DNA from: Obrimoposthia wandeli
Lineage: Eukaryota
Direction of reading: 5' to 3'
NCBI GenBank assembly: GCA_977020255.1
Contig: CDROCS010000506.1
Location: forward strand, 496,001 to 560,000
Length of the DNA stretch: 64,000 nt
Positions 471 through 23,496 of the stretch are shown one piece after another. The position numbers and the translations under genes are program-made. The stretch's first letter is position 1. Each line of letters begins with the position of its first letter. A model generated the notes under the pieces. The model was not told where the DNA came from. It searched no databases and saw nothing but the letters and a program-made list of their open reading frames with translations.

Positions 471-1787
471 CTATTTCGCACCAACACGTAATAATGTACC
501 ATTTTGAACATAAGCAAGAGACTCTAAGATAATGCCATTGGTATTTGCTGTAATTGCTTTGTTAAGACGGCCATCACTTTCATAACGACCTGAATACCAA
601 CCTTTTTGTGCTGAGTATAGGCTTTTAACATCACCCATTAACAGGCTTGTATACTCAGTATCGTACAAGGCGTACCAACCGAAGGATGCTTTAGTAGATA
701 ATGTCTTTAAATGTGACGCATCTTCACCTGTATCTGAAATTGCATTCCATTCTTTACCGTCAGAAAACACCGTGTTATAAACAAAATAAGGCGCAACATC
801 GACATTATCTTCACTCACAGCAGTTAAGATACCTAAGCGCTCGTAACGGTTTTCTTGCGCTTTATAAACACGATAGGCAAAGATTTCTGAAATACTGTCA
901 GCACCAAATTCTAAACTATCTAAAATATATGACTCACTCACCACGTAGTTATGTGCATGGTACTTAGCCGGATCACGTCTATCTGTTGGAATATCAACAC
1001 CATCAATATTAACCATTTCTAAATAATCAATATATTTCATCGCGTTAAATACATCGAGACCCATTAACGATAACGCTTTAGAGGCATATTCTTCATAGCC
1101 AATACGTCCTTCTTGCACCAGTTCTAAACCACCTGTTTTTGCTGGGCGAGAACCATATAAATAGCCTTTGTCGATCAAGCTGCCAACATGCCAGTGATTC
1201 AATACATCGTTCACTTGCTTGTTATAGTCAGGGTATTGCCAAATAAGAATGTTTAACGGCACCAAAATACGGCCAATATCAATCGCAGACCAACCAATAC
1301 CATCAGCCACAGGGTTATTTGCATAATCCACCATTTCAAGAGTTTTGGTGTTATAAGCTTTGTTTGGTAGCTTGCCTTCGATCAAGGGTAAGCGCGCTAA
1401 TGTGTGTAGCACTTTCTCCATTTTTAAATCAAATTCCGCTTGGCTAACGATATTTAATTTTTCAGCGCCAATAAGCCCCATTAAATAAGACGCAGTATCC
1501 CACATCGTTGTAGAAGGATAGCCATCAACAGAATTTACAAGTCCGGTATTCGGCTGCACATTATTATCAAAATAACGCCAAGCAGTCTTGGCCCACTCAT
1601 ACTCTTCTGCTGTTAAAATACGGCTTTCACGCAGTGGAATAGGCTCTTCCGTGGTAAAAGATAGATTACCTAGTACTTGCGTGTACTCACGTGTTTCAAT
1701 TGTAAAAGCAATGACTAACGCAGTCACTAGACCACCAATAAATACAAAATGGTGACGCGCTTTAATTAAGTTTTGTTTAAACGCCAT
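471..1787 (-). CDS. DUF3131-family protein (putative (alpha/alpha)6 glucanase/transglycosylase), N-terminal membrane anchor
   Basis: AKTAWRYFDNN, TGLVNSVDGYPSTTMWD, LPNKAYNT, GWSAIDIGR, EGRIGYEEY, VSED motifs; start reassigned to MAFKQ (ATG 1787), which overlaps the GT2 stop. Confidence 0.8.
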   Translation of the reverse strand: MAFKQNLIKARHHFVFIGGLVTALVIAFTIETREYTQVLGNLSFTTEEPIPLRESRILTAEEYEWAKTAWRYFDNNVQPNTGLVNSVDGYPSTTMWDTASYLMGLIGAEKLNIVSQAEFDLKMEKVLHTLARLPLIEGKLPNKAYNTKTLEMVDYANNPVADGIGWSAIDIGRILVPLNILIWQYPDYNKQVNDVLNHWHVGSLIDKGYLYGSRPAKTGGLELVQEGRIGYEEYASKALSLMGLDVFNAMKYIDYLEMVNIDGVDIPTDRRDPAKYHAHNYVVSESYILDSLEFGADSISEIFAYRVYKAQENRYERLGILTAVSEDNVDVAPYFVYNTVFSDGKEWNAISDTGEDASHLKTLSTKASFGWYALYDTEYTSLLMGDVKSLYSAQKGWYSGRYESDGRLNKAITANTNGIILESLAYVQNGTLLRVGAK

Positions 1788-3627
1788 ATTCAAATCCCTC
1801 TGATTCTTGTTCTTGTTTTTTTTCTGTTGGTGGAGTCCAAAATGCGGCAGCAATCATGCCCCACATCGCCATCATATTATTCACAATCCAAAAACTATTC
1901 AGTACTAACCCGCCAAACGAGTAATCACCAAAACTGCCCGTTACATAGCTAAACCAGGCAAAACACATACTGAATAAACTTAATACGAACACCCCTATTT
2001 GCGGCGCGACTAACTTCCAAAAAGTACCCGTTTGACGTTCTTTAGGGGTCGTTGGGAAGCTAATTTTACGGCCTCGAAGTACCGTCCATAACGCCCGCAG
2101 ATTAACTGGGAAGAAAGATAAGAAATTGGTTTTACCTTTATAACCAGCTACCCCCCAAGTACCTAACATCATGGCTAGTTCAGCGGTAATAACAAATGGC
2201 AAGAAGTGCATATAGAATGTCGTATCATAAGCACTTACTGGCGCAAGGCTGGTAAGGAAATAAACGATAGGACAAAGTAAGAAAATAATGTTCCATACAG
2301 CCGACAAATTTGACCAGAAACTGGCTAAATACATCGCCTTCTGCTTTAACGACATGCCTTTTTTCAATAACGGATTATCATTCATAAAGATATCAATCGA
2401 ACCACCAGCATATTTGAAACGCTGTACAGTCCAAGTTTGTAAATCCTGTGGCGACAGCATTTTACTTTCCACTTCAGGATGCTGTACTGAACGCCAATTA
2501 CGTTCGGTATCGGAATGCAAAACAATCGAGGTATAGATATCTTCTGATACATGAAATTTATACGGGGTAAAATCGGTATCAAACAAGATCTCTTGGCGTA
2601 AGTTAGCCGAAATATCTTTATCGACTTCTTTCTCTTTGGTTAACTTACGGATCTGCTTTTCAATATCTTCTTGTGACTGACTGATCTGCGCGCTGTAGCT
2701 TCGTAGTGCAGCTTCCATCACGGCTTCACGACGGTGGATAGAACCCGCACCACAACAGAAAGAAGCATTCACCCAGTTACGACGGCGCTGGATCACGTCA
2801 TAAAACATTTGTGGGTCGTTAACAAACGGGTCTTCGCCTAATGTGACAGGTCCATAGCACTTTTCAACTAAACGACCTAACCCATGTCCTACGCGACCCA
2901 TTTTACCTTGTAACCAATCAGGTAAGCGTTGGCCTTCAGGCAAGTCAAAGAACCATTGTGGTGTTTGTACCCATGCCACATCAGGGTCACGAAAGTAACC
3001 GAGAGTGTGTTCTAGTATTGTCGAGAATGGTCGAGTATCAGCGTCACAAATAACGATAAAATCACCATAGCTTTGCTCTAATGCATTTTTAAGGTTACCG
3101 GCTTTAAAACCTTCGTTGTTATCACGGGTAATATATTCAACATTATATTCCGCTGCTAACGCAGCCATCGCTGGACGACGACCGTCATCGAGAATGTATA
3201 TTTTAGTTTCAATTTCAAATGGGTAAGTAATATTTAACGCATCGCGAATACTCAAGCGCACCAATTCTGGGTCTTCATCATAAGTAGGGAAGAAAACATC
3301 AACACTGATTGGTCTATCTTCTTCTGTATCCGTGACACATTCAGCGAGTTTAAATGGCGGAGACTGTTTCGGCTCGTCTTGAGTTTTCCACAAGTTAAAG
3401 GTAAACAATACCGAACCAATAAAAGCACAAGATTCAGCGAATGCTAATGGCAGCGAAAACCACAACGCATCATAATTTAACGCAAAGCTCCAACGCCACC
3501 ACAGATACCACACACCTAGGGTCAGGTTACATGTCGCTAAATATTGATAAGCGAGCTCACGGCTAAAACTATATTCGGATGGTTTTGGCGGCTTACGATG
3601 CTCAAACTCTTTGAAATAAAAATCCAT
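1777..3627 (-). CDS. Processive GT2 glycosyltransferase, cellulose-synthase-like, without PilZ
   Basis: LDDGR, ICDAD (DxD), TPQ, FCCGAG, SED and QRFKY motifs; 2 N-terminal and about 4-5 C-terminal hydrophobic helices; start at MDFYF follows GGAG. Confidence 0.88.
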   Translation of the reverse strand: MDFYFKEFEHRKPPKPSEYSFSRELAYQYLATCNLTLGVWYLWWRWSFALNYDALWFSLPLAFAESCAFIGSVLFTFNLWKTQDEPKQSPPFKLAECVTDTEEDRPISVDVFFPTYDEDPELVRLSIRDALNITYPFEIETKIYILDDGRRPAMAALAAEYNVEYITRDNNEGFKAGNLKNALEQSYGDFIVICDADTRPFSTILEHTLGYFRDPDVAWVQTPQWFFDLPEGQRLPDWLQGKMGRVGHGLGRLVEKCYGPVTLGEDPFVNDPQMFYDVIQRRRNWVNASFCCGAGSIHRREAVMEAALRSYSAQISQSQEDIEKQIRKLTKEKEVDKDISANLRQEILFDTDFTPYKFHVSEDIYTSIVLHSDTERNWRSVQHPEVESKMLSPQDLQTWTVQRFKYAGGSIDIFMNDNPLLKKGMSLKQKAMYLASFWSNLSAVWNIIFLLCPIVYFLTSLAPVSAYDTTFYMHFLPFVITAELAMMLGTWGVAGYKGKTNFLSFFPVNLRALWTVLRGRKISFPTTPKERQTGTFWKLVAPQIGVFVLSLFSMCFAWFSYVTGSFGDYSFGGLVLNSFWIVNNMMAMWGMIAAAFWTPPTEKKQEQESEGFEYGV

Positions 3628-3648
3628 CTTCTTTCGCTCCAAGTAACT

Positions 3649-5352
3649 TTAATTAAAATAGCTATTATGTACAGCTAATAAACCAATTAGACTGGCGTTA
3701 TAATCAATTGCAAATTCATTCACGGCATATGATTTTTCACTGTCCACATAACTCATCATCCCTTCATTTTTCGGGGCTACCCCAGCTTGGGCTTTTTCGT
3801 TAGGCCCACCAACTAAGAAACCAGGTAAGCTAATACCCGTCGATATCCGGTATAAGTGATGCAGATTACGCACCGCATAAGTGCCAGTGTGAGTAACAAA
3901 ACTCATGTTAAATGCGTTAGCACCTAATAAATAATCAATCTGTGACTGCACTACACCACGGTAATTACGCGTCTGTGACGAGGCATCCACACCTGCCATT
4001 AACACGCCAGCCTCAGCGGTCATTTTATTTGACCCCCAAATAAAACGTTGGTTAGCAATGGCAAAAGGCGCTATTGAGGCTTGCTCTGAATAACGTTTGG
4101 CAACCTGCTCAACATCTTTACGTAATTGCGCGGTCAGTTCGCTATCAACAGATTCGATAAGATGAGAGATACCCATTAACGCCGGGTTTTTCCATTCAAA
4201 AATAGCCACAAACTCTTTATCGTATAAATCATCAAATCCAGTTAAGTACTTGCCTTGCTTCGTACTTAAATATAACTCTGCCAGTGCCCATAAACGGTCA
4301 TCTACATCCGTTTCTAATGATGCTTCACTGTCTTCTGGATTTTGCACATAAGGACCTGAACCACTATCGTCACCTTTTTGCCAATCTATATATTGTTCTG
4401 GCTGTTGCTCTAAATAGCGCCAAGCATGAATCGCAGACTTTAAATAATCACGCGCTAAATTTGGGCGCAAAGGTTTCAATACACGAGAGGCGAATGCCAT
4501 CGTTGCTGCAAATTTGGCCGTTTCAGGCGTACTCACACCGTAGATATAGCGAACCTGCTGATCTTGCCAAGGGACTATTTTATCCGGCCATTTAGCCCCT
4601 GATACTTTGCGATAAACAGCGCCATCTTCGCGCTGCATTTTACCTAACCAGTCCAAGCCATATATCGCTTCTTCCAATATGGCTGGTAATGTACTGTCGG
4701 CATGATTGCCAGTCATAAATAACGCTGGCGATTGACTATAAGCTTCCAGTAAACGCGCAACCGTGATCGTGGTCGTCGCAACATATTTACCGTAATCACC
4801 CGCGTCATACCAACCACCCGTCATATCTAATTGCTCTCCCGCTTGATGGTAATCATCACTGCGGAAAATAATTGCATCTTGAACATGGCTTTGTGGTCGA
4901 TTCATACCTGTTGTTTGATCGAAGATTGCGCTGCCTGAACGTTGTAAATACAATGCTTTAACAAGGCGAGCTGCCAGTCCCTGATAAACATTATCGGCAA
5001 TCTGAAACGGTGCAGAGGTCGTCGACTTACTTTGTAGTTGATACCAACCAGGCTGGGTAACATTAGAGAAATTAATTGCTTTAGAGCCAGATTCAATCGT
5101 CACACTGAAAACACCCACCTCATTTTCTTTTGTCTCATTACCTACAAGTGGTTCTGCACCTGCCGTATCCATGGCGACTAAATTGACTAATTCTTCAGAA
5201 GGGTTTAACCAATAGGCTTTTTTATCGCCACTAGGTAGATAACCAAGTTGATTAACAACGAGTTGATTACTGTCTTGCTCGCTCATAGCGGTACTAGAAA
5301 AAGCTAAACTTAATAATGTAACAACGACAATCCTTGCCATAGCTCTTGCCAT
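3649..5352 (-). CDS. GH9 endoglucanase with signal peptide and N-terminal Ig-like domain
   Basis: NQLGY Ig motif, GGWYDAGDYGK, LHH and NEFAIDYNA catalytic motifs. Confidence 0.9.
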   Translation of the reverse strand: MARAMARIVVVTLLSLAFSSTAMSEQDSNQLVVNQLGYLPSGDKKAYWLNPSEELVNLVAMDTAGAEPLVGNETKENEVGVFSVTIESGSKAINFSNVTQPGWYQLQSKSTTSAPFQIADNVYQGLAARLVKALYLQRSGSAIFDQTTGMNRPQSHVQDAIIFRSDDYHQAGEQLDMTGGWYDAGDYGKYVATTTITVARLLEAYSQSPALFMTGNHADSTLPAILEEAIYGLDWLGKMQREDGAVYRKVSGAKWPDKIVPWQDQQVRYIYGVSTPETAKFAATMAFASRVLKPLRPNLARDYLKSAIHAWRYLEQQPEQYIDWQKGDDSGSGPYVQNPEDSEASLETDVDDRLWALAELYLSTKQGKYLTGFDDLYDKEFVAIFEWKNPALMGISHLIESVDSELTAQLRKDVEQVAKRYSEQASIAPFAIANQRFIWGSNKMTAEAGVLMAGVDASSQTRNYRGVVQSQIDYLLGANAFNMSFVTHTGTYAVRNLHHLYRISTGISLPGFLVGGPNEKAQAGVAPKNEGMMSYVDSEKSYAVNEFAIDYNASLIGLLAVHNSYFN

Positions 5353-5361
5353 AGTTATCTC

Positions 5362-7680
5362 CTAACGGTCTTGGGGTAAATAGTCATTTCTACTTACTTC
5401 ATTATCTTGCTGGTCATATAAAATTATCGTCACTGCATCAGATAAACCTGCTAATGACTGTTTATTTAAAATAATACTTGCGGTGTTTGCGTCGATATTG
5501 ATGCTCTGCATACTCCAAGTATCACCATCTTCATTATCTCTAATCAGCATTTTCATATCTTGATAAGCACGTAAACTATCATTGATAACAGTGATAGTTA
5601 TCGACTGACTCGCGCTGCTATTTTCACGTTCTAACACTGCCAATAGCGGCTGGTAAGCACTTTGCATAGCAACAAAACCAGGTTTTGCAATACGATCTAC
5701 ATCAAGTACCGACCAAGTGATTGCATTCCAACTATCGTTAAACATAAATTGATAAATTGCAGCCAATCCTGACCCTTTATTTAATCTTAGTTGCTCGATT
5801 GCCGACTTGGTTATTAATCGTTGATATTCCTGACTATTACTCACGAATTGTGACAGAGATTCACCTTCGTCAATTTTGGCTATTTGTAGGGTTTCACGAG
5901 GTTGGTAATTGTGGTAGCTGAGTTGCTTAATAAGCTTAGCTGAAAGCGGCCATGCAGGCACTTCGTCCAACATGTCAATAACAGCGTTATAACTTGGCAT
6001 TGCTTGCGCACCAAATTCACTGACAATCGCCGTTTTCGGTTTCTGGCTATAATCACTATAATGCCCAGAGTACCAGCCAAGCCAAGGATGTTCAGCAGTA
6101 TAAGATGCCTTACGCACGATCCTGTCATCATTTACAGTAAGCAACTGCTGGTAGACAGCCTCTGTTAACGCGACATTTTTATCTGTTTTATAACTCGGGT
6201 ATTTGTATTGCATCCAAGTTGCATCCCAAGGCGGTTCATTTTGACCGCACCAAAATGCAATAGAGGCATGGTTATATAACATGTCAGTCATATCTTTAAC
6301 TTGTGATACCGCTTCAGCTCTAAATTCAGCGCTATCGCTATAGCCCCATTGCAGTGGGAAATCTTGCCACACGATCATGCCAAGTTTATCCGCTTGCTGA
6401 TAAAATGCTTTTCCAGCTACATGCGCATGTACGCGAATACTGTTGATGTTAGCCTTGCGCATTAGCTTTATATCATTGGCATAATCGAGTTCACTTACCC
6501 CGCCCAACCATTGACTAGCAATATAGTTCGTACCACGAATAAAATAAGCACGGTCATTAATATAGAAAACCCCTTGGCCTTCATCAAAAGCTACTTTTCT
6601 AAAACCGATATTTTGCTTACTTATATCGGATGTTTCATTATTCATGCTTACTTGTACTGATAGCTGGTATAAATTCGGATTGCCCCAGTCCCACGGCCAC
6701 CACAACGCCCGCTTAACTTGTGGTAACTGCCAATCAATAACCTGTTTGCCAGTCACTACTTGTGTGTTCAATTTATAAGTTTCTAGCTCATCACCAAACA
6801 CCTGTGTTTTATCATCAAGATCAAGGTCACCACTGCTATTACTCTGAATTCGAATTAACTTAAACTCTAATGTCACATCACCCGCATACAGGCTATCTAA
6901 CGTAATCGCGACCTGCCCCGCTGTTTTCTGGAGAGCCACATCGAGCACTTCCGCCTTTACCTTAATATTATCAATCGCGATTAAGCCAGTTGTACGTAAT
7001 GCGACATCGCCCCAAATACCACCAGAATTACGATCTTGACCGCGGTCAGACCATGCGCCTCCAGGGCGAGTGTCATGGTGATTAAGAACGCCTTTAATTA
7101 AGGTTTTATTTAAAGACCAATCTTGGGTTAGTGTTTCATTCGGGCTATCCACTAATACTTCTAGTTGATTATCTCCGCCATTAATCGCATTCGATACGTC
7201 TAACGAAAATGGCGCAAAGTAACCTTGATGAGAACCGACATCGATATTGTTTAAACGCACTGTCGCCGCGTAATCGACCGCGGTAAAATCCAGCCAATAA
7301 CGTTTAACTAGATCTGATGTTAAAGATGACGAGAGAGCGACATTTGGCAGTGAAAATTGGCGATGATAAATAGCTTTACCTGCATGATTTACGCCTTCAT
7401 TATACCAATTGTTTGGTACTGAAATGGCAGTGACCACGCCAGAAGCTACGGATTGATTATTGTCGACTTGCGTTTGAGAGTTCTTGAGTTGCGTATTATC
7501 GAGTTGTGTATTGTTGAATTGAGAACTTTTGAGTTGAGTAAACGTCGGGGGGATTATGTCGAACTGCCAATCACCGTTAAGTGATTGGCTATTCGGGTTG
7601 ACATCATGACTGTATTTAGATGTACTGCAAGAAGTAACTAACAAGATGTTCAACAAAATAAATACAGTTTTTATGTTCAC
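5362..7680 (-). CDS. GH2 glycoside hydrolase (beta-mannosidase/glucuronidase-like) lipoprotein
   Basis: GTG start at 7680 after GAGGA gives MNIKTVFILLNILLVTS-C (lipobox); IRGTNY, RVHAH, WCGQNE (acid/base) and VSEFG (nucleophile) motifs. Confidence 0.85.
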   Translation of the reverse strand: MNIKTVFILLNILLVTSCSTSKYSHDVNPNSQSLNGDWQFDIIPPTFTQLKSSQFNNTQLDNTQLKNSQTQVDNNQSVASGVVTAISVPNNWYNEGVNHAGKAIYHRQFSLPNVALSSSLTSDLVKRYWLDFTAVDYAATVRLNNIDVGSHQGYFAPFSLDVSNAINGGDNQLEVLVDSPNETLTQDWSLNKTLIKGVLNHHDTRPGGAWSDRGQDRNSGGIWGDVALRTTGLIAIDNIKVKAEVLDVALQKTAGQVAITLDSLYAGDVTLEFKLIRIQSNSSGDLDLDDKTQVFGDELETYKLNTQVVTGKQVIDWQLPQVKRALWWPWDWGNPNLYQLSVQVSMNNETSDISKQNIGFRKVAFDEGQGVFYINDRAYFIRGTNYIASQWLGGVSELDYANDIKLMRKANINSIRVHAHVAGKAFYQQADKLGMIVWQDFPLQWGYSDSAEFRAEAVSQVKDMTDMLYNHASIAFWCGQNEPPWDATWMQYKYPSYKTDKNVALTEAVYQQLLTVNDDRIVRKASYTAEHPWLGWYSGHYSDYSQKPKTAIVSEFGAQAMPSYNAVIDMLDEVPAWPLSAKLIKQLSYHNYQPRETLQIAKIDEGESLSQFVSNSQEYQRLITKSAIEQLRLNKGSGLAAIYQFMFNDSWNAITWSVLDVDRIAKPGFVAMQSAYQPLLAVLERENSSASQSITITVINDSLRAYQDMKMLIRDNEDGDTWSMQSINIDANTASIILNKQSLAGLSDAVTIILYDQQDNEVSRNDYLPQDR

Positions 7681-7690
7681 AATGTTCCTC

Positions 7691-8146
7691 TTACTGCGTC
7701 CACAATTTCTTGTGAAATTCAAAAGTGTTTTTATTATCTTCACAGGTATAGATAAGACTATCCGTTAGCTGAACAATAATGATGAAACCGCGTCCAGACG
7801 TAGTCCAAGTAGCCTCATCATCCGGATCTGGCACCACAAATTCAGCATTCACTGCCGCTTTAAAGGCACTGCGATCCATTGCTTGACCAAAATCAGAAAT
7901 CTCAATCACTAATTCAGCATCATCTTTTAAGTAACAGATCACTTCAATTGGGCAGCCATCAGTTAGCTCATATGCATGTTCGTAAGCATTATTAACTAAC
8001 TCTGCAATACATAATTCAACCTGCCCCATGATATTTTCTTCGATGTCATTTTCGAGAGCAAAAGCATTTATATCTTCCGCTATCACTCGCGCGACATCAT
8101 CCGAGCTTTGATAATTTTGCTTAAAAAGCTGCTGAGTGTTCGCCAT
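7691..8146 (-). CDS. RsbW/SpoIIAB-like Ser/Thr kinase (HATPase, anti-sigma type)
   Basis: ELVNNAYEH N-box, ISDFG, SGRGF; AAGGAG upstream of MANTQQ. Confidence 0.88.
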   Translation of the reverse strand: MANTQQLFKQNYQSSDDVARVIAEDINAFALENDIEENIMGQVELCIAELVNNAYEHAYELTDGCPIEVICYLKDDAELVIEISDFGQAMDRSAFKAAVNAEFVVPDPDDEATWTTSGRGFIIIVQLTDSLIYTCEDNKNTFEFHKKLWTQ

Positions 8147-9392
8147 CAGTAAGCTCCTTATGCTCATTATTTTTTATTTCATCCTTACTCTGACTAGCAG
8201 TCGCTTTTTTTGTTTGTTCTTCTTGCTTAATTTGTTCGCGGATCTGAGGAAGATACAAGGCCACTTCACTACGAATTGGGATCGGGTGTTGCGTTACACG
8301 TCGATCTTTAACGATATTAATAGCCCCCATTTCGAGTAACGATTGCGAGAATCCATCATGGCTAATAAAGTAATCACCAAACACGGTTTTATTCTCTATG
8401 TACGCGGCACTCGCGATATGAATGTAATCACGTAATAAACTATGTTTAACGACGGCTTCTGTCTCGATGGTACAATTCGCCCCTATCACTGCAGGACCAA
8501 CGATGGTGCAGCCAGGTCTAATGTCACAACCACTACCAATAATAATGGGCGGTGTAACATCACATGCATCGATATCAAACACAGTATTAATCCCTAACCA
8601 CACACCAGGTCTAACCTGCGTACCAGGGATTGGATAACCAGACACTTCGCCATTAAGAATATCTTTTGTCACCTGCCAAATATCGCTGATATTACCAACA
8701 TCAAGCCACTGAAAATCCATATCTACAGCACTAAACTTCACTTTATTTGCAACTAATGAAGGGAACAATTGGCTACCGATATCAAACTCTTCATCGTTAG
8801 GAATATAATCAAAAATCGCCGGTTCAAAAATATAAATACCGGTATTAATGCGATTAGAAAGTGCATCTTCTACCGCAGGTTTTTCTTGGAAACACGTAAC
8901 CATGTCAAAATCGTCAGTAACAACCACACCGTATTTATCGACTTCTTCAGGTTCGACCTGACGAGTGATAATCGTCGCAATAACACCTTTTTCTTTATGT
9001 CTGCGCACTGCTTCCGTTAAGTCCAAGTCAATCCAGGCATCACCACAAACAACCACAAACGTCTCATCAAAAAAACCTGAGAATTGCTGGATTTTATTCA
9101 TGCCACCCGCAGAACCCATGGCTTTAGTTTCAAACTTGCCGTCGCGTACTTCACCTTCGTACGAGTAAGTTAACTGCACATTAAAATGATGACCATCGCC
9201 GAAATAATTTTCGATAATTTCAGCTAAATGGCTGGTATTAACGGCGATCTTATCGATGCCATGAGCGGCAAATAATTGGATCATAGACTCCATAACCGGC
9301 TTACCTAAAATAGGAATCATCGGTTTTGGGATCATCTGTGTAATTGGCCTAACGCGGGTACCTTTACCTGCGGCAAGTATCATTCCTTTCAT
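8121..9392 (-). CDS. cugP: Sugar-phosphate nucleotidyltransferase with left-handed beta-helix, CugP-like (cyanobacterial-type UDP-glucose pyrophosphorylase)
   Basis: MILAAGKGTRVRPIT..IPKPMIPIL.KPVME, GSAGG..KIQ.F..FFD.TFVV.CGDA.IDLDL, FQEKP, INTGIYIFEP, IPG..VRPGV..GIN match my recollection of Synechocystis CugP (Sll1558); needs an alignment to confirm. Confidence 0.7.
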   Translation of the reverse strand: MKGMILAAGKGTRVRPITQMIPKPMIPILGKPVMESMIQLFAAHGIDKIAVNTSHLAEIIENYFGDGHHFNVQLTYSYEGEVRDGKFETKAMGSAGGMNKIQQFSGFFDETFVVVCGDAWIDLDLTEAVRRHKEKGVIATIITRQVEPEEVDKYGVVVTDDFDMVTCFQEKPAVEDALSNRINTGIYIFEPAIFDYIPNDEEFDIGSQLFPSLVANKVKFSAVDMDFQWLDVGNISDIWQVTKDILNGEVSGYPIPGTQVRPGVWLGINTVFDIDACDVTPPIIIGSGCDIRPGCTIVGPAVIGANCTIETEAVVKHSLLRDYIHIASAAYIENKTVFGDYFISHDGFSQSLLEMGAINIVKDRRVTQHPIPIRSEVALYLPQIREQIKQEEQTKKATASQSKDEIKNNEHKELTDGEHSAAF

Positions 9393-9404
9393 TTCAAACC
9401 TCCA

Positions 9405-9737
9405 TTAAGCATCAACTGCAATAGCATGATCAACGCTGTCGTAACACGTGATTAATTGATCCATACGAGTTAGTTTTAACAGCTCTTTCACTGCACGTTG
9501 TGGATTAACCACGCTCAGTTTTTTGCCACGTAACATTTTATAACCGGCCATCACGGCGCCTAATCCACTGCTATCCATAAACCTTACCTGTGTTAAATCA
9601 ATAACCAGATGTGCATCAACACTCTGAGACAACTCTGTTAATTGCGTTCTAAAATCTGGTGCTAAGCGAGCGTCAAAACGTTCCTCATTTATTTGAAGAA
9701 CTGTGCATTGACCTTGGTTGATAATTTCGTGTTGCAT
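9405..9737 (-). CDS. STAS-domain anti-sigma-factor antagonist (RsbV/SpoIIAA-like)
   Basis: LVIDLTQVRFMDSSGLG containing the conserved phosphoacceptor Ser; about 110 aa. Confidence 0.92.
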   Translation of the reverse strand: MQHEIINQGQCTVLQINEERFDARLAPDFRTQLTELSQSVDAHLVIDLTQVRFMDSSGLGAVMAGYKMLRGKKLSVVNPQRAVKELLKLTRMDQLITCYDSVDHAIAVDA

Positions 9738-10948
9738 GTGTGTTTCCCTTCTGAGTAGCCTGTCCATTCGACTGCTAATACACTAACATCGTCATCAAAT
9801 TGAGCGGATTGTTGCCATTCTCTGACTCTGTCAACGAGCAATTCGGTTTGAATCGTGGTTGGATGGTGTTGAAAATCAATTACTGCGTTTCTAAGACCTT
9901 CTTCTGAAAATTGTGTTTTATCTTTTTCTGCCTCGGTTAAACCATCTGAGTACATCCATATTTTATCACCGGGTTCTAACTGGATCTGCGCCGTTTTATA
10001 TTCTACAAAATCAAAGGCGCCGACAACAAAACTATCCTGACCAATAAACTCTGCACTGCATTTGTCATTGTGTAACCAGACAAGTGGTGGATGTCCCCCA
10101 ACTGAAAATGATAGCAAACCTGTTTTTACATTTAATACTGAATAGATCATGGTGAAATACAGTAGATTTTGCTCATCTGTCACATAGATATCATTCAGCT
10201 GTTTAATCACTTCATGAGGCGGTGTTATTTCGTAAAATGGTGGTGTATTGATAGTTCTTTTTAATAACGCACCTTTATCATTATTTGCGGTAATACTTTG
10301 CTGAATAGAGAACGACATTAATGCTGAAGACACACCATGGCCTGCTACATCAAGCAGGTAAAAAGCGACATGATCTTCATCTAACTGCATATACCCCAGC
10401 ATATCACCACCAATTTGGGCGCTGGGAATAGACACGTAACTCAATTCGACACCCGTATACTTACGCTTCGTCGGTAATAATCGTTTAACGAGTTCACCAG
10501 CAGATTCCAAATCTTTTTTTATCGTCGCGTAAGCCGTATCTAATTTAATATTTTTATCGGTAATTTCATTATGTAGGTCTAACGTTCTAAAACCGGCTTT
10601 AACACGGGCATCAACTTCATTAATGTCTGCATTTTTAACAAAAAAATCATCCGCACCGGCATTAATACCTTCAATTATCGAATGTTGATCGTCTTTTCCA
10701 GACAATAATACAAAGAATATATAGCGACCGAAATCAGCAGACTTAAGTCGACTACAAAGCTCAATACCATTCATATTTGGCATCATCCAATCACTCAATA
10801 CGAATTGGACTTGTGGGTTTTCAGCAAGTGTCGCTAATGCTTCAATACCATCCATCGCGGTTATTACATGGTAGCCACGTTTAATGAGGATTTGCTTCCA
10901 AACGAGTAGCATGGTGCGGTTATCGTCAACTAACAGTATGTTTTTCAT
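9689..10948 (-). CDS. Response regulator receiver fused to SpoIIE/PP2C phosphatase (RsbU/RsbP-like)
   Basis: LLVDD, SDWMMP, GADDFFVK receiver; GGD, DVAGHG, GHPP, YSDGLTE, DDVS PP2C motifs. Confidence 0.92.
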   Translation of the reverse strand: MKNILLVDDNRTMLLVWKQILIKRGYHVITAMDGIEALATLAENPQVQFVLSDWMMPNMNGIELCSRLKSADFGRYIFFVLLSGKDDQHSIIEGINAGADDFFVKNADINEVDARVKAGFRTLDLHNEITDKNIKLDTAYATIKKDLESAGELVKRLLPTKRKYTGVELSYVSIPSAQIGGDMLGYMQLDEDHVAFYLLDVAGHGVSSALMSFSIQQSITANNDKGALLKRTINTPPFYEITPPHEVIKQLNDIYVTDEQNLLYFTMIYSVLNVKTGLLSFSVGGHPPLVWLHNDKCSAEFIGQDSFVVGAFDFVEYKTAQIQLEPGDKIWMYSDGLTEAEKDKTQFSEEGLRNAVIDFQHHPTTIQTELLVDRVREWQQSAQFDDDVSVLAVEWTGYSEGKHTCNTKLSTKVNAQFFK

Positions 10949-11189
10949 TGATAAACTAACCACCCTAGAAGCTAAAAGAAATTAAATACACAAGGTGTAT
11001 CTATACCAAAAGTGTTAATATTCGGCCCATAACTTCAGTCTAGTTAAGCAGCTAATAGCTGCAGACAATTAGCACCAAAGTTTGATCTGTGCCACAAATA
11101 TTTATGTTACGGATAAGATTAACTTGATGTTATTGCTCCATTAATAAGAGGATAGGATCCTATTTTAGAATTAAGCATGACACTTACAA

Positions 11190-12200
11190 ATGCAAAAACT
11201 GTTAGCCCTCCTCACTTTTATCAGCTTTACCGCACACTCGACGGGCTATCAGACTGAGTCATCAAAACGAGCACCGACAACATCGTCCCCCAATATTAGC
11301 CAATCATCGTCTGCTACATCTAATGCCAATAAAAATGCCGAAGAAGACGAGGAAGATGAATTAGATCTCATATGGCGCGGTGCGAGCAGCTCATTTGCCT
11401 TACCTTTTGATTCATGGGCTTATCAAGAAGACACTAATAATGACAGCTTATTTCATGGCTTAAGTGGTAATGTCGCACTCAATTTTCCCTTATTAAAAAC
11501 GGAATCAGCAAATCTTCCTGCCGATGTACAATCTGGACCAACAAACACCAACGCTACCGCTACCTTGTCATTAAAATACAGTATCCTGGGTAATTGGTTT
11601 GTCTCTGGCACTATGTATTATTATTTAGATCAAGACCAGCAACAGCCTTGGAACCCCGACTTTACCTACGTCTTTGGCTACAGTGATTGGCGTCCCTATA
11701 CCGTCAGTCTGATGTATGCCAACTATGGTGGTAATCGTTTTAAATCAACGCCAGAACAAGCCGTTACTAACTTCGATCAAGGTACTTGGTCGTTAGGCTG
11801 GAAGTTCCCTATCACTAAGCCTTTTATCGATTGGTTATCTTTCACTGATAAAGGCGCCATTGGCTGCCAAGCTAATTATAATTACACTAAAGAGTATTTT
11901 GACCTTGCTTCAACAAGTTACCAAGCTGACCATCAAACCGTAAGCCTAGGCTGTAAGTATGCGATTATTGGTAATTGGTACGTCAATGCGACTGCATTTT
12001 ATTATTTTGATAGTGCACAAAAACAACCTTGGAATCCTGATTTCACCTATGGGTTTGGCTATTTTGATTGGCACCCAGGTACTATCACATTGCAATATAA
12101 TAACTATTCGGGGAACCGATGGAATTCATCTGATCGTGCAGAAGGAACGGGCCGATTTATTGACGGGGCAATTTCACTTTCCTATTCATTTAGTTTCTAA
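11190..12200 (+). CDS. Putative outer-membrane beta-barrel protein with internal duplication
   Basis: Signal peptide, acidic/Ser linker, aromatic alternating strands, C-terminal SYSFSF; the ~56-aa motif (KY.I.GNW...PWNPDFTY.FGY.DW.P.T..L.Y.NY.GNR) occurs twice, 127 aa apart. Confidence 0.7.
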   Translation: MQKLLALLTFISFTAHSTGYQTESSKRAPTTSSPNISQSSSATSNANKNAEEDEEDELDLIWRGASSSFALPFDSWAYQEDTNNDSLFHGLSGNVALNFPLLKTESANLPADVQSGPTNTNATATLSLKYSILGNWFVSGTMYYYLDQDQQQPWNPDFTYVFGYSDWRPYTVSLMYANYGGNRFKSTPEQAVTNFDQGTWSLGWKFPITKPFIDWLSFTDKGAIGCQANYNYTKEYFDLASTSYQADHQTVSLGCKYAIIGNWYVNATAFYYFDSAQKQPWNPDFTYGFGYFDWHPGTITLQYNNYSGNRWNSSDRAEGTGRFIDGAISLSYSFSF

Positions 12201-21909: not shown

Positions 21910-23496
21910 GTGATGATCTCAATAGCGATCTTATCGATCGTGAGCTTTACTAGCATTGCAGAACCGTCACCAACCCAACAAGATAACGAACCTGAAAAAT
22001 TAAGTTTTTATGGGGGCAGAGCTGTACCTCATGTACCTGTAAGTGATTCACAGACTCAAACATCATCATCAGGCGCTAGTGAAAACTCAAACAAGCGCGG
22101 GTCACAACGCCGAGCAATACACCCTACTGATACCGAAGACAGTAATACGGAAAGTGCGCCTCCCCAACTAACTAAACAAAGCCAAAAAAAGTTAAGCGTA
22201 AATAATGCTATAAAAATAACAGTTCAATCACCTGAAAAGGTTATTTTAAAAAACAATGGAATAAAAGTAACTTCGCTGTCTGACGATACAACAATAACCA
22301 CCAAACAGCTGACGCGAGAAGATTTAGTATTAGCCAAAAAAGCGCAGTATTATATCGAGCGTAATTGGAATAAAAACACCGGTTTAATTGATTCTGTACA
22401 AGGTTATCATCACGCAACACTTTGGGATATGGCCAGTGGTATTGGCGCCATTCTCGCGTTAGAAAAACTTGAGTTAATCAGCAGTTTTGATGCGTCATCT
22501 CGACTCACTAAAACCTTAATAACCCTGTTTAAACTACCACTGTATAACAACGAATTACCGAATCGAGAGTACAATACTCAATCAGGCTTACCGTCGGGTT
22601 CTCTCAGTAAAACAGCTTCTAACGGTAACGGTTGGTCGGCATTAGATATTGGCCGCCTGTTAATTTGGTTAGAAATAACCAAACAATACAAGCCAGAATT
22701 AACGCCGCTAATTACGTTAATTACCAAAAAGTGGAAGTTTGAACGAACAGTGTTTAATCAGACTCTGTATGGTGAACTGAAACAGAAACGCAGCACTTCA
22801 TATCGTCAAGAAGGTCGCTTAGGCTATTTACAATATGCAGCGCAAGGTTATCAATTCTCGGGACTTGATGTGGCAAATGCATTTAAACAAGATAATACCA
22901 CCGAGATTATGCAAGAAGGCATCCCCCTTCATATCGACCAACGTAACCTGCCTTTTTTTACTAGCGACAGTTATGTACTCCAAGCGATTGAACTCGGTAG
23001 CCCTATTGTGTGGTGGAATCAATTAGAAAACGTTTACCAATTACATAAAACGCATTATGCAGACACCAAAATACTGCGGATATTTGCTGAAGATGCGATG
23101 AGCAAAGCACCGTGGTTTTCTTATAACAATATTAATATCTATGGTAAATCATGGTTAAGTACCAATACCCGAGGCAAATCGATTACTAATCCGCAAATAT
23201 TTAGTAATAAAGTCGCCTTTGCTTTTAGTGTGCTTTTTGATGATGATTTTAGCCAACAACTCGCTACTCAAGTGCTTTCTAATAGCTTATCTAAGCGCTC
23301 AGTACCGACTGGGTTATATCAAGACAGTTCGACCAATACCGCTTACAACATCAATACTAACTCATTAATATTAGTCGCATTATGGTTTAAATCCCGTAAT
23401 AACACGCCGATTTATCAACCCGCAGATAGCCGCTTGAATAAAATAGTGAATACGACCGTTAATAAAAACAATAGTAACGACTTAACAGCACTTTAA
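21910..23496 (+). CDS. DUF3131-family protein, third paralogue, with signal peptide and disordered N-terminal linker
   Basis: TGLIDSVQGYHHATLWD, LPNREYNT, GWSALDIGR, EGRLGYLQY. Confidence 0.8.
   Translation: MMISIAILSIVSFTSIAEPSPTQQDNEPEKLSFYGGRAVPHVPVSDSQTQTSSSGASENSNKRGSQRRAIHPTDTEDSNTESAPPQLTKQSQKKLSVNNAIKITVQSPEKVILKNNGIKVTSLSDDTTITTKQLTREDLVLAKKAQYYIERNWNKNTGLIDSVQGYHHATLWDMASGIGAILALEKLELISSFDASSRLTKTLITLFKLPLYNNELPNREYNTQSGLPSGSLSKTASNGNGWSALDIGRLLIWLEITKQYKPELTPLITLITKKWKFERTVFNQTLYGELKQKRSTSYRQEGRLGYLQYAAQGYQFSGLDVANAFKQDNTTEIMQEGIPLHIDQRNLPFFTSDSYVLQAIELGSPIVWWNQLENVYQLHKTHYADTKILRIFAEDAMSKAPWFSYNNINIYGKSWLSTNTRGKSITNPQIFSNKVAFAFSVLFDDDFSQQLATQVLSNSLSKRSVPTGLYQDSSTNTAYNINTNSLILVALWFKSRNNTPIYQPADSRLNKIVNTTVNKNNSNDLTAL

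Follow-up and report, generated by a model that had tools for sequence, protein, structure and literature searches.

A tyrosine-type branch of BcsA-like synthases associated with DUF3131 and STAS proteins, and its probable glucan product

What does a cellulose-synthase-like enzyme make, and what controls it, when the aromatic residue of its acceptor motif is changed and its PilZ domain is missing? The question is raised by a gene at positions 1777-3627 (minus strand) of a window of 64,000 nucleotides, the whole stretch of DNA analysed here, which spans positions 496,001 to 560,000 of contig CDROCS010000506.1 (C506) in the Obrimoposthia wandeli assembly GCA_977020255.1. Coordinates below are window positions unless a contig or locus is named. 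C506 is a bacterial contig of 3.78 Mb in an assembly of 1.35 Gb and 6912 contigs, and it is Photobacterium-like, its nearest proteins coming from Photobacterium species with 83-94% identity. The gene is an open reading frame (ORF) for 616 amino acids of glycosyltransferase family GT2, intact and beginning with an ATG at 3627 and ending in the stop codon 1777-1779. It very probably encodes a glucan synthase that is intact, belongs to a clade of its own and works with DUF3131 and STAS proteins. The fuller reading, given a somewhat better than even chance on sequence and gene context, is a UDP-glucose-dependent synthase whose product probably contains β-1,2 bonds and which is controlled by STAS and not by cyclic di-GMP (c-di-GMP).

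The catalytic motifs of the synthase are in place. The UDP-binding aspartate motif L-D-D (3184-3192; D147/D148 within LDDG, residues 146-149) and the DxD motif C-D-A-D (3037-3048; D195/D197) are read from the translation and are invariant, and H-V-S-E-D (2539-2553) aligns with the VTED of BcsA, with SED at residues 361-363 as the TED equivalent and D363 as the catalytic base. The gating-loop motif F-P-T-T-P-K (2041-2058; residues 524-529) lies opposite 'kfnvtak' of BcsA, where the motif is FxVTxK. Its residues F524, T527 and K529 are invariant among 75 aligned sequences, and the loop is retained across subclades. The departure lies in the acceptor motif. QxxRW is regarded as the signature of processive β-glycan synthases, in which the tryptophan of the motif binds the acceptor sugar. 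In the present protein, the motif reads Q-R-F-K-Y (2410-2424; K405/Y406), in which the glutamine is retained, arginine has become lysine, and tryptophan has become tyrosine. The original prediction had described intact D, DxD and SED motifs together with QRFKY, and both parts hold: LDD, CDAD and HVSED stand at the expected sites, and the position of QRFKY is exact by translation. The alignment to E. coli BcsA pairs 'vsed' with 'vted', 'qrfkyagg' with 'qrirwarg', and 'kisfpttpke' with 'gkfnvtakg'.

The architecture is equally unusual. Two insertions had been claimed, and both are present when spacing is compared with relatives that keep the tryptophan (Trp-type). Insertion 1 (2833-2943; residues 229-265), with helices predicted at 235-258, follows QTPQWFFD; QTPQWF and FCCG are 69 residues apart as against 36-44 in Trp-type relatives, i.e., about 25-33 extra residues. 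Insertion 2 (2572-2715; residues 305-352) is a charged helical hairpin between FCCGAGSIHRR and SED, where a spacing of 65-69 residues against 23 gives about 42-46 extra. It appears as two long helices (300-330 and 337-350) in the AlphaFold2 (AF2) model. Column identity is 0.58 in insertion 1 and 0.50 in insertion 2, compared with 0.83-0.94 in the catalytic core. The model predicts 2 + 4-5 membrane helices. The last one ends at residue 595, 21 residues before the C-terminus at 616, and the short acidic tail (1780-1836) has a conservation of 0.28. A PilZ domain was not found in the synthase with Pfam, so the claimed absence of PilZ and the end of the protein about 20 residues past the last helix are confirmed as well. 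The cytosolic N-terminal peptide (3568-3627; residues 1-20) carries the motif YFxxFExRxPP, with Y4, E9, R11 and P13 invariant in the 75 sequences and a mean column identity of 0.71. The motif is present in the consensus of distant members too, and its conservation makes the peptide a candidate regulator-docking motif, alternative to the insertions.

By sequence and by model, BcsA is the closest solved relative. Pfam assigns Glycos_transf_2 at 7.9e-15, and the Cellulose_synt match is sub-threshold. A phmmer search against solved structures gives E-values of 4.5e-38 for E. coli BcsA (7lby) and of 3.5e-25 to 5.7e-25 for Rhodobacter BcsA. The AF2 model, made from the alignment of 75 homologues, has a mean predicted local distance difference test (pLDDT) of 82.6; its first Foldseek match is E. 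coli BcsA 9b8v_E (E 1e-27, template modelling (TM) score 0.72 over 589 columns), followed by Rhodobacter BcsA and then by plant CesAs and barley CslF6. Like BcsA of E. coli (7lby/9b8v) and Rhodobacter sphaeroides (4hg6/4p00), the synthase has a GT-A fold with D, DxD and a TED-type base, an interface helix with Q-x-x-basic-aromatic, the gating loop, a predicted transmembrane channel and, as the context implies, UDP-glucose as donor. Unlike BcsA, it has SED instead of TED, K-Y instead of R-W, and FCCGA instead of FFCGS, contains two insertions (~30 and ~45 residues), has only two N-terminal helices, and lacks PilZ. Its scores against the NCBIfam cellulose-synthase equivalogs TIGR03030 and NF008558 are 213 bits (cut-off 699) and 183 bits (cut-off 992), far below both cut-offs. 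No BcsB, BcsC, BcsD or BcsZ (GH8) was found among the operon ORFs scanned with Pfam. As judged from sequence and model, the synthase is thus BcsA-like in chemistry and topology and differs from a bona fide BcsA in QxxRW, PilZ, BcsB and equivalog scores. Plant CesA and CslF6 likewise have no PilZ, and their FxCG strand and TED are likewise separated by an inserted segment; insertion 2 presumably sits where the class-specific region of plant CesA lies, which fits the motif order. In contrast to the plant enzymes, the synthase has neither a zinc-finger N-terminus nor the plant-conserved region (P-CR), its insertion is a short charged helical hairpin, and QxxRW, which plants retain, is altered.

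A simple explanation for such a motif would be a decaying or dead synthase in which KY is a strain-specific lesion, and the original prediction had regarded uniqueness to this strain as a sign of decay. The departure from QxxRW fits this explanation, and nothing more does. More than 2000 proteins match the GT2 at E <= 1e-20, and a relative is present in at least 550 species genomes. Identity is 58-85% for the members from Photobacterium, Vibrio, Aliivibrio, Shewanella, Ferrimonas, Methylobacillus, Leucothrix, Thalassotalea, Paracoccus and Thiolinea, which belong to the Alpha-, Beta- and Gammaproteobacteria and all read QR[FY]KY; such identity across three classes also speaks against decay. K405 and Y406 are invariant in the 75-sequence alignment, as are D, DxD, SED and the gating-loop residues. 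In the best 80 of 550 species loci, QRFKY[SA]GG occurs in 79 and QRYKYAGG in one, and SED in 80/80. Because KY is invariant in the 75 homologues and the 80 species loci, it is not a product of decay. With the frame intact and the other catalytic motifs invariant, decay is refuted and its chance is practically nil. QRFKY, the insertions and the loss of PilZ are not due to chance or to a single strain, since all of them are family-wide.

The change marks a lineage of its own. The signature H-x-SED, FCCGA, QTP[QH]WF and Q-x-x-[K/R]-Y persists down to about 35% identity in a search of 1.84 billion cluster representatives, whereas classical relatives have TED, FFCGS and QxxRW. The range of the clade extends from Vibrionaceae to Thiothrix, Methylobacillus, Rhodobacteraceae and Bacteroidota-like contigs. 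A FastTree phylogeny was built from 93 catalytic cores, 27 with the tyrosine (Tyr-type) and 66 from Trp-type cellulose-synthase relatives. All 27 Tyr-type sequences form one clade, separate from the 66 others, with a support of 100, and a single change explains the trait. The RY forms are basal and the KY forms derived. SED goes with tyrosine and TED with tryptophan in 93/93 rows of the tree. The clade, which is separate and old, is defined by H-x-S-E-D, FCCGA, QTP[QH]WF and Q-x-x-[K/R]-Y, by its pair of cytosolic insertions and by the usual lack of PilZ. Its cluster names are generic only, e.g., 'cellulose synthase (UDP-forming)', and no functional study of the Tyr-type clade was found in the literature.

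Two side observations concern the variable parts of the protein. The nearest Trp-type sister group (SVTEDMAT, QRLRWAQG), which comprises P0159, P0166, P0187, P0210, P0216 and their relatives, has an insertion of about 150 amino acids at the place of insertion 2, which corresponds to the class-specific region of plants. This loop is thus an insertion hot spot. P0122 (750 amino acids) is a Tyr-type synthase that carries a PilZ domain (E 1.5e-4), and c-di-GMP control therefore exists elsewhere in the clade.

The synthase lies in an operon on the minus strand. The gene order is response regulator-PP2C phosphatase, STAS, NTP-transferase, RsbW-like kinase, GH2 lipoprotein, GH9 and synthase, followed by three DUF3131 genes, a secreted protein of 398 amino acids and a second GT2-like gene. 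Neighbours were tallied in 160 related loci, 80 genomic and 80 metagenomic, with each count covering only loci with sufficient flanks. DUF3131 is directly downstream of the GT2 on the same strand in 121/135 loci, and this holds even where the GT2 is only 38-45% identical. STAS is found in the flanks of 103/109 loci, the RsbW-like kinase in 88/109, and a β-barrel in 79/109. Of the regulatory neighbours, STAS is the most constant. GH2 and GH9 occur in some lineages only, and GH9 is absent from most loci.

The regulatory genes consist of a response regulator receiver fused to a PP2C (SpoIIE) phosphatase (9689-10963, minus; Pfam), a STAS protein with the phospho-serine motif MDSSGLG (9405-9767, minus; Pfam STAS 1.1e-16 and motif alignment), and an RsbW-like serine kinase of the HATPase_c_2 type (7691-8167, minus; Pfam). 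Phosphatase, kinase and phosphorylatable STAS occur without a sigma factor, and the set is kept in 88-103 of the 109 loci; the hidden Markov model (HMM) for the STAS count was built from ORFs of at most 210 amino acids, leaving out fusions with NTP-transferase. In 9/9 loci of a subclade characterised by H-A-SED and Q-x-x-R-Y, a STAS of 102-137 amino acids immediately precedes the synthase (-10 to +70 nt), and the flanks yielded no kinase; Pfam confirmed the STAS of L093. In the STAS proteins of this subclade, the D-S-S-G phospho-serine motif is replaced by N-N-T-G, N-Y-N-G and similar sequences, whereas the STAS of kinase-bearing systems retains MDSSGLG. The kinase-less Bacteroidota-like loci are L087-L094, L152 and L163, and they have neighbours with type IX secretion system (T9SS) tails. 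Two metagenomic ORFs, L156:4184-5965 and L166:3375-5174, fuse an N-terminal STAS to NTP-transferase/LbH directly upstream of a Tyr-type synthase.

Gene order, loss of the phospho-serine and the fusions together suggest that STAS acts directly on enzymes. By the Rosetta-stone argument, the fusions indicate action on the UDP-glucose pyrophosphorylase, and STAS possibly bridges pyrophosphorylase and synthase. On the same sequence evidence, there is about an even chance that STAS binds the synthase itself. The original prediction had proposed the insertions as a docking site for the STAS protein. A functional link between STAS and synthase is supported by gene order, with STAS adjoining the GT2 in 9/9 loci of the kinase-less subclade. 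In contrast, the docking site does not gain support, because both insertions keep the same length in a subclade without STAS nearby and are the least conserved cytosolic segments.

The gating loop that PilZ controls in BcsA is retained in the synthase, which has no PilZ of its own, and c-di-GMP might instead act in trans through a stand-alone PilZ protein. A candidate ORF of 127 amino acids (L004 4647-5030) is found about 5 kb downstream, on the other strand at the cluster end, with an E-value of 1.3e-4, at the Pfam cut-off, and the PilZ domain of P0122 speaks for the same idea. However, no PilZ homologue was detected by tblastn beside the operon in the 160 related loci, although a short divergent one could escape such a search, and the conserved neighbours are STAS, kinase and phosphatase. 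Control through this PilZ protein is very improbable. STAS control is also in keeping with a genetic precedent in Anabaena, where the response regulator-SpoIIE phosphatase HenR and the kinase Alr3423 control the STAS-fused priming transferase All4160 while transcription is unchanged (preprint 10.64898/2026.04.08.717354). Both systems comprise a response regulator-SpoIIE phosphatase, an RsbW-like kinase and a phosphorylatable STAS and have no sigma factor. They differ in that the Anabaena STAS is fused to Bac_transf, whereas here it is separate beside a BcsA-like synthase or, in some relatives, fused to the pyrophosphorylase.

DUF3131 is the partner that nearly always adjoins the synthase on its downstream side. 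DUF3131 no. 1 (471-1787, minus; Pfam DUF3131 1e-144) has a start that overlaps the stop of the GT2 by 11 nt. It comprises a conserved N-terminal membrane anchor and a predicted periplasmic (α/α)6 barrel (AF2, pLDDT 90), and this anchored protein occupies the position downstream of the synthase where a BcsB-like domain was not found. Its two paralogues have lipoprotein signals, and all three DUF3131 proteins should therefore face the periplasm. Invariant acidic residues of DUF3131 are E226, E232, E293 and D297. P0174 (714 amino acids) is a fused GT2-DUF3131 protein, although an assembly frameshift could yield the same ORF. A fourth DUF3131 paralogue of 528 amino acids (21910-23496, plus; Pfam 2.1e-87) is present about 18 kb from the operon.

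The fold of DUF3131 points to β-1,2-glucan. In a Foldseek search with the model of DUF3131 no. 1, all of the top 19 matches are β-1,2-glucan enzymes, with E-values from 1.5e-11 to 5e-7. They belong to GH192 (EeSGL1, 1.5e-11), GH144, GH189 (the cyclisation domain or whole cyclic β-1,2-glucan synthase, Cgs), GH194 and GH162. Among other six-hairpin enzymes, the best E-value is 3e-5, and that of BcsZ is about 1e-4. A profile of 18 DUF3131 sequences matches the GH189 domain 8wy1 at 7e-5, an alignment that covers the first two helices only. In addition, the Brucella cgs gene (BMEI1837) is annotated as 'DUF3131 domain-containing protein'. GH189 is a retaining transglycosylase that cyclises linear β-1,2-glucan, and many homologues of unassigned function surround it (PMC10834661, PMC11842490). 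Orthology of the three DUF3131 genes with PgSGL1-3, the characterised β-1,2-glucanases of Photobacterium gaetbulicola, was also considered; this was rejected, as phmmer gives no match to 8xuj or 8xuk and the locus tags are other ones.

The donor is suggested by the NTP-transferase gene (8121-9392, minus), of NTP_transferase + LbH type, which over residues 1-367 matches the solved UTP--glucose-1-phosphate uridylyltransferase chain 8x7s_B (E 1.4e-123). This makes a glucan the most likely polymer. A search for genes of the OpgG/OpgD family found none in this assembly and none in four of the five further carrier genomes. The top module among the genes that respond to salt shock in Shewanella piezotolerans consists of four genes, DUF3131 genes among them (PMC8371737). 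Taken together, the fold and profile of DUF3131, the label of Brucella cgs, the absence of OpgG/OpgD and the salt-shock module suggest a β-1,2-linked or β-1,2-containing glucan, and slightly less than an even chance is given to the β-1,2 linkage. The most likely role resembles that of osmoregulated or cyclic glucans.

The original prediction had instead drawn an altered linkage or acceptor specificity from the motif itself. For linkage, this step is not borne out. The enzymes known to make β-1,3-glucan, mixed-linkage glucan, mannan, chitin and hyaluronan all keep QxxRW, so tyrosine alone is no predictor of linkage, and the linkage argument depends on DUF3131. The broader expectation, a product other than plain c-di-GMP-gated cellulose, agrees with the context, i.e., no PilZ, no BcsB in the scanned ORFs, and a DUF3131 with the fold of β-1,2-glucan enzymes.

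Several observations weigh against a STAS-controlled synthase of β-1,2-containing glucan. The nearest solved and named relatives all make β-1,4-glucan, and no BcsA-type enzyme is known to form β-1,2 bonds. The operon GH9 (3649-5352, minus; Pfam 1.8e-74), which has a signal peptide, has β-1,4-endoglucanases as its best solved relatives (3x17, 2.7e-87). One Bacteroidota-like subclade has synthase and STAS but mostly no DUF3131. STAS might act on the pyrophosphorylase only. Expression of the region is suggested by nine short contigs from one marine metatranscriptome run, 99-100% identical, which cover DUF3131 no. 1, the synthase and GH9, and of which two cross the gene junctions on either side of the synthase (1721-1875 and 3547-3740), but these contigs may stem from carried-over DNA. 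The S. piezotolerans genes are inferred from gene order to be the same operon, and PMC8371737 does not give the direction of their change. Finally, the PgSGL4 group of the β-1,2-glucanase clan is inactive on β-1,2-glucan (PMC12102758), so membership of the fold is no guarantee of substrate.

Part of this evidence would suit an ordinary cellulose synthase, in which K/Y replaces R/W conservatively and preserves both the binding of phosphate and the stacking of the sugar, DUF3131 is a BcsZ-like trimmer, GH9 serves as another cellulase, and the difference is confined to regulation. BcsA is the best match by sequence and structure, lysine retains the charge and tyrosine the aromatic ring, and the retention of QxxRW in enzymes of other linkages, as noted above, means that a motif change need not bring a new linkage. 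The endoglucanase-like gene is also not confined to this operon, as Ferrimonas, Methylobacillus and metagenome loci also have a GH9-like gene close to the synthase. However, most loci are without GH9, the equivalog cut-offs are missed widely, and BcsB, BcsC and BcsD were not found among the scanned operon ORFs. The partner DUF3131 has the fold of β-1,2-glucan enzymes, and the GH8 enzyme BcsZ is a roughly million-fold poorer match. The SED/Tyr pair, fixed over a deep clade, suggests a changed active-site geometry. Plain cellulose is thus an unlikely product, though one with appreciable support.

Another β-glucan may be considered, such as a β-1,3 (curdlan-like), β-1,3/1,4, β-1,6-branched or mixed 1,2/1,4 polymer, with DUF3131 diverged to fit it. 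The BcsA-like enzymes CrdS, BgsA and CslF6 make β-1,3- or mixed-linkage glucans, and CslF6 is among the structural matches. DUF3131 is a separate family with a putative substrate, the second GT2-like gene (L004 5110-6369) could add branches, and GH9 and DUF3131 together could suit a mixed polymer. In contrast, a Pfam scan of the operon ORFs found no GH16-, GH17- or GH81-type enzyme, and β-1,2-glucan is the substrate of all fold relatives of DUF3131 whose function is known. These points make another β-glucan rather improbable.

A β-1,2-containing product invites comparison with the two known glucan systems. Cgs also pairs a glucosyltransferase with a GH189-type (α/α)6 domain, to which DUF3131 is related by profile and fold. 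Here, in contrast, two separate proteins are involved, the transferase is of the channel-forming BcsA type, DUF3131 is predicted to be periplasmic and not cytosolic, and neither GH94 nor an ABC exporter is present in the scanned operon ORFs. Cgs structures match the synthase model only as distant GT-A folds (E 7e-8, TM 0.50). The OpgH/OpgG system is similar in that a membrane GT2 exports a glucan on which periplasmic processing enzymes act, and in the hint of a salt-shock response. No NCBIfam OpgH model matches the synthase, and the periplasmic partner is DUF3131 of the GH189 clan, whereas that of OpgH belongs to GH186.

In the proposed mechanism, the pyrophosphorylase of the operon would make UDP-glucose, and the synthase would polymerise glucose at the cytosolic face and thread the chain through its own channel. 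DUF3131 would take the chain in the periplasm and cut or transglycosylate it, remodelling of the product would fall to the lipoprotein DUF3131 paralogues, joined in this species by GH9 and GH2, and a small OmpG-like barrel would release it. The RsbW-like kinase would phosphorylate STAS, the response regulator-PP2C phosphatase would remove the phosphate, and STAS would act directly on the synthase, the pyrophosphorylase or both. A bolder version, tentative and on the doubtful side, is that the clade represents a third, BcsA-type class of β-1,2-glucan synthase, a 'split' cyclic-glucan synthase in which the chain would leave by the channel of the synthase and the anchored, GH189-like DUF3131 would release or cyclise it in the periplasm. 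The Ser/Tyr pair would turn the acceptor so that O2 and not O4 attacks, and phospho-STAS would replace the PilZ/c-di-GMP gate and dock the pyrophosphorylase onto the synthase for regulated substrate channelling.

The remaining genes of the region may be described briefly. The GH2 lipoprotein (5362-7743, minus; Pfam) is accessory, as is GH9, and its best solved relative is the β-mannosidase 5n6u (2e-33). The candidate export pore is an outer-membrane β-barrel encoded divergently upstream (11190-12200, plus; Atlas outer-membrane β-barrel 0.99, OmpG-like 0.95). In Bacteroidota-like loci, a homologue of the barrel lies directly after DUF3131, which gives a three-gene unit of synthase, DUF3131 and barrel. 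The ORFs of L146 and L153 (~1030-1050 amino acids) match both the DUF3131 and β-barrel HMMs and are maybe fusions of a periplasmic domain and a porin.

At the operon end, the secreted protein of 398 amino acids (C506:492473-493669; L004 6473-7669, minus) has a weak TPR-like lead (Atlas 0.88), and the second, weakly GT2-like protein has 419 amino acids (C506:491110-492369; L004 5110-6369, minus) and is the one that might add branches; this second gene is conserved in Vibrionaceae and Shewanella. Just past the cluster (C506:486418-489878; L004 418-3878, minus) are genes for IIB, IIC and IIA of a phosphotransferase system (PTS) of the lactose/cellobiose family and for GH4, which could import and cleave β-glucosides released from the polymer by its breakdown. 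Elsewhere in the assembly, other bacterial contigs carry two further copies of the operon, at C2070:3473-10856 and C1674:296141-318484 (99% and 86% protein identity). The second DUF3131 gene of the C2070 copy matches in two pieces (8304-8936 and 8941-9438), maybe because of a frameshift or as a pseudogene.

The Tyr-type clade is a large, uncharacterised branch of the cellulose-synthase-like enzymes. With its fixed tyrosine and serine, it is a natural experiment on how the active site sets the linkage. If the product is a β-1,2-glucan, this would explain how many marine bacteria without OpgGH and Cgs could make such glucans, and the orphan family DUF3131 would gain a role. The ties of STAS to synthase and pyrophosphorylase offer a concrete target for partner-switch modules without a sigma factor, a target that systems like SypA of Vibrio fischeri have long lacked.

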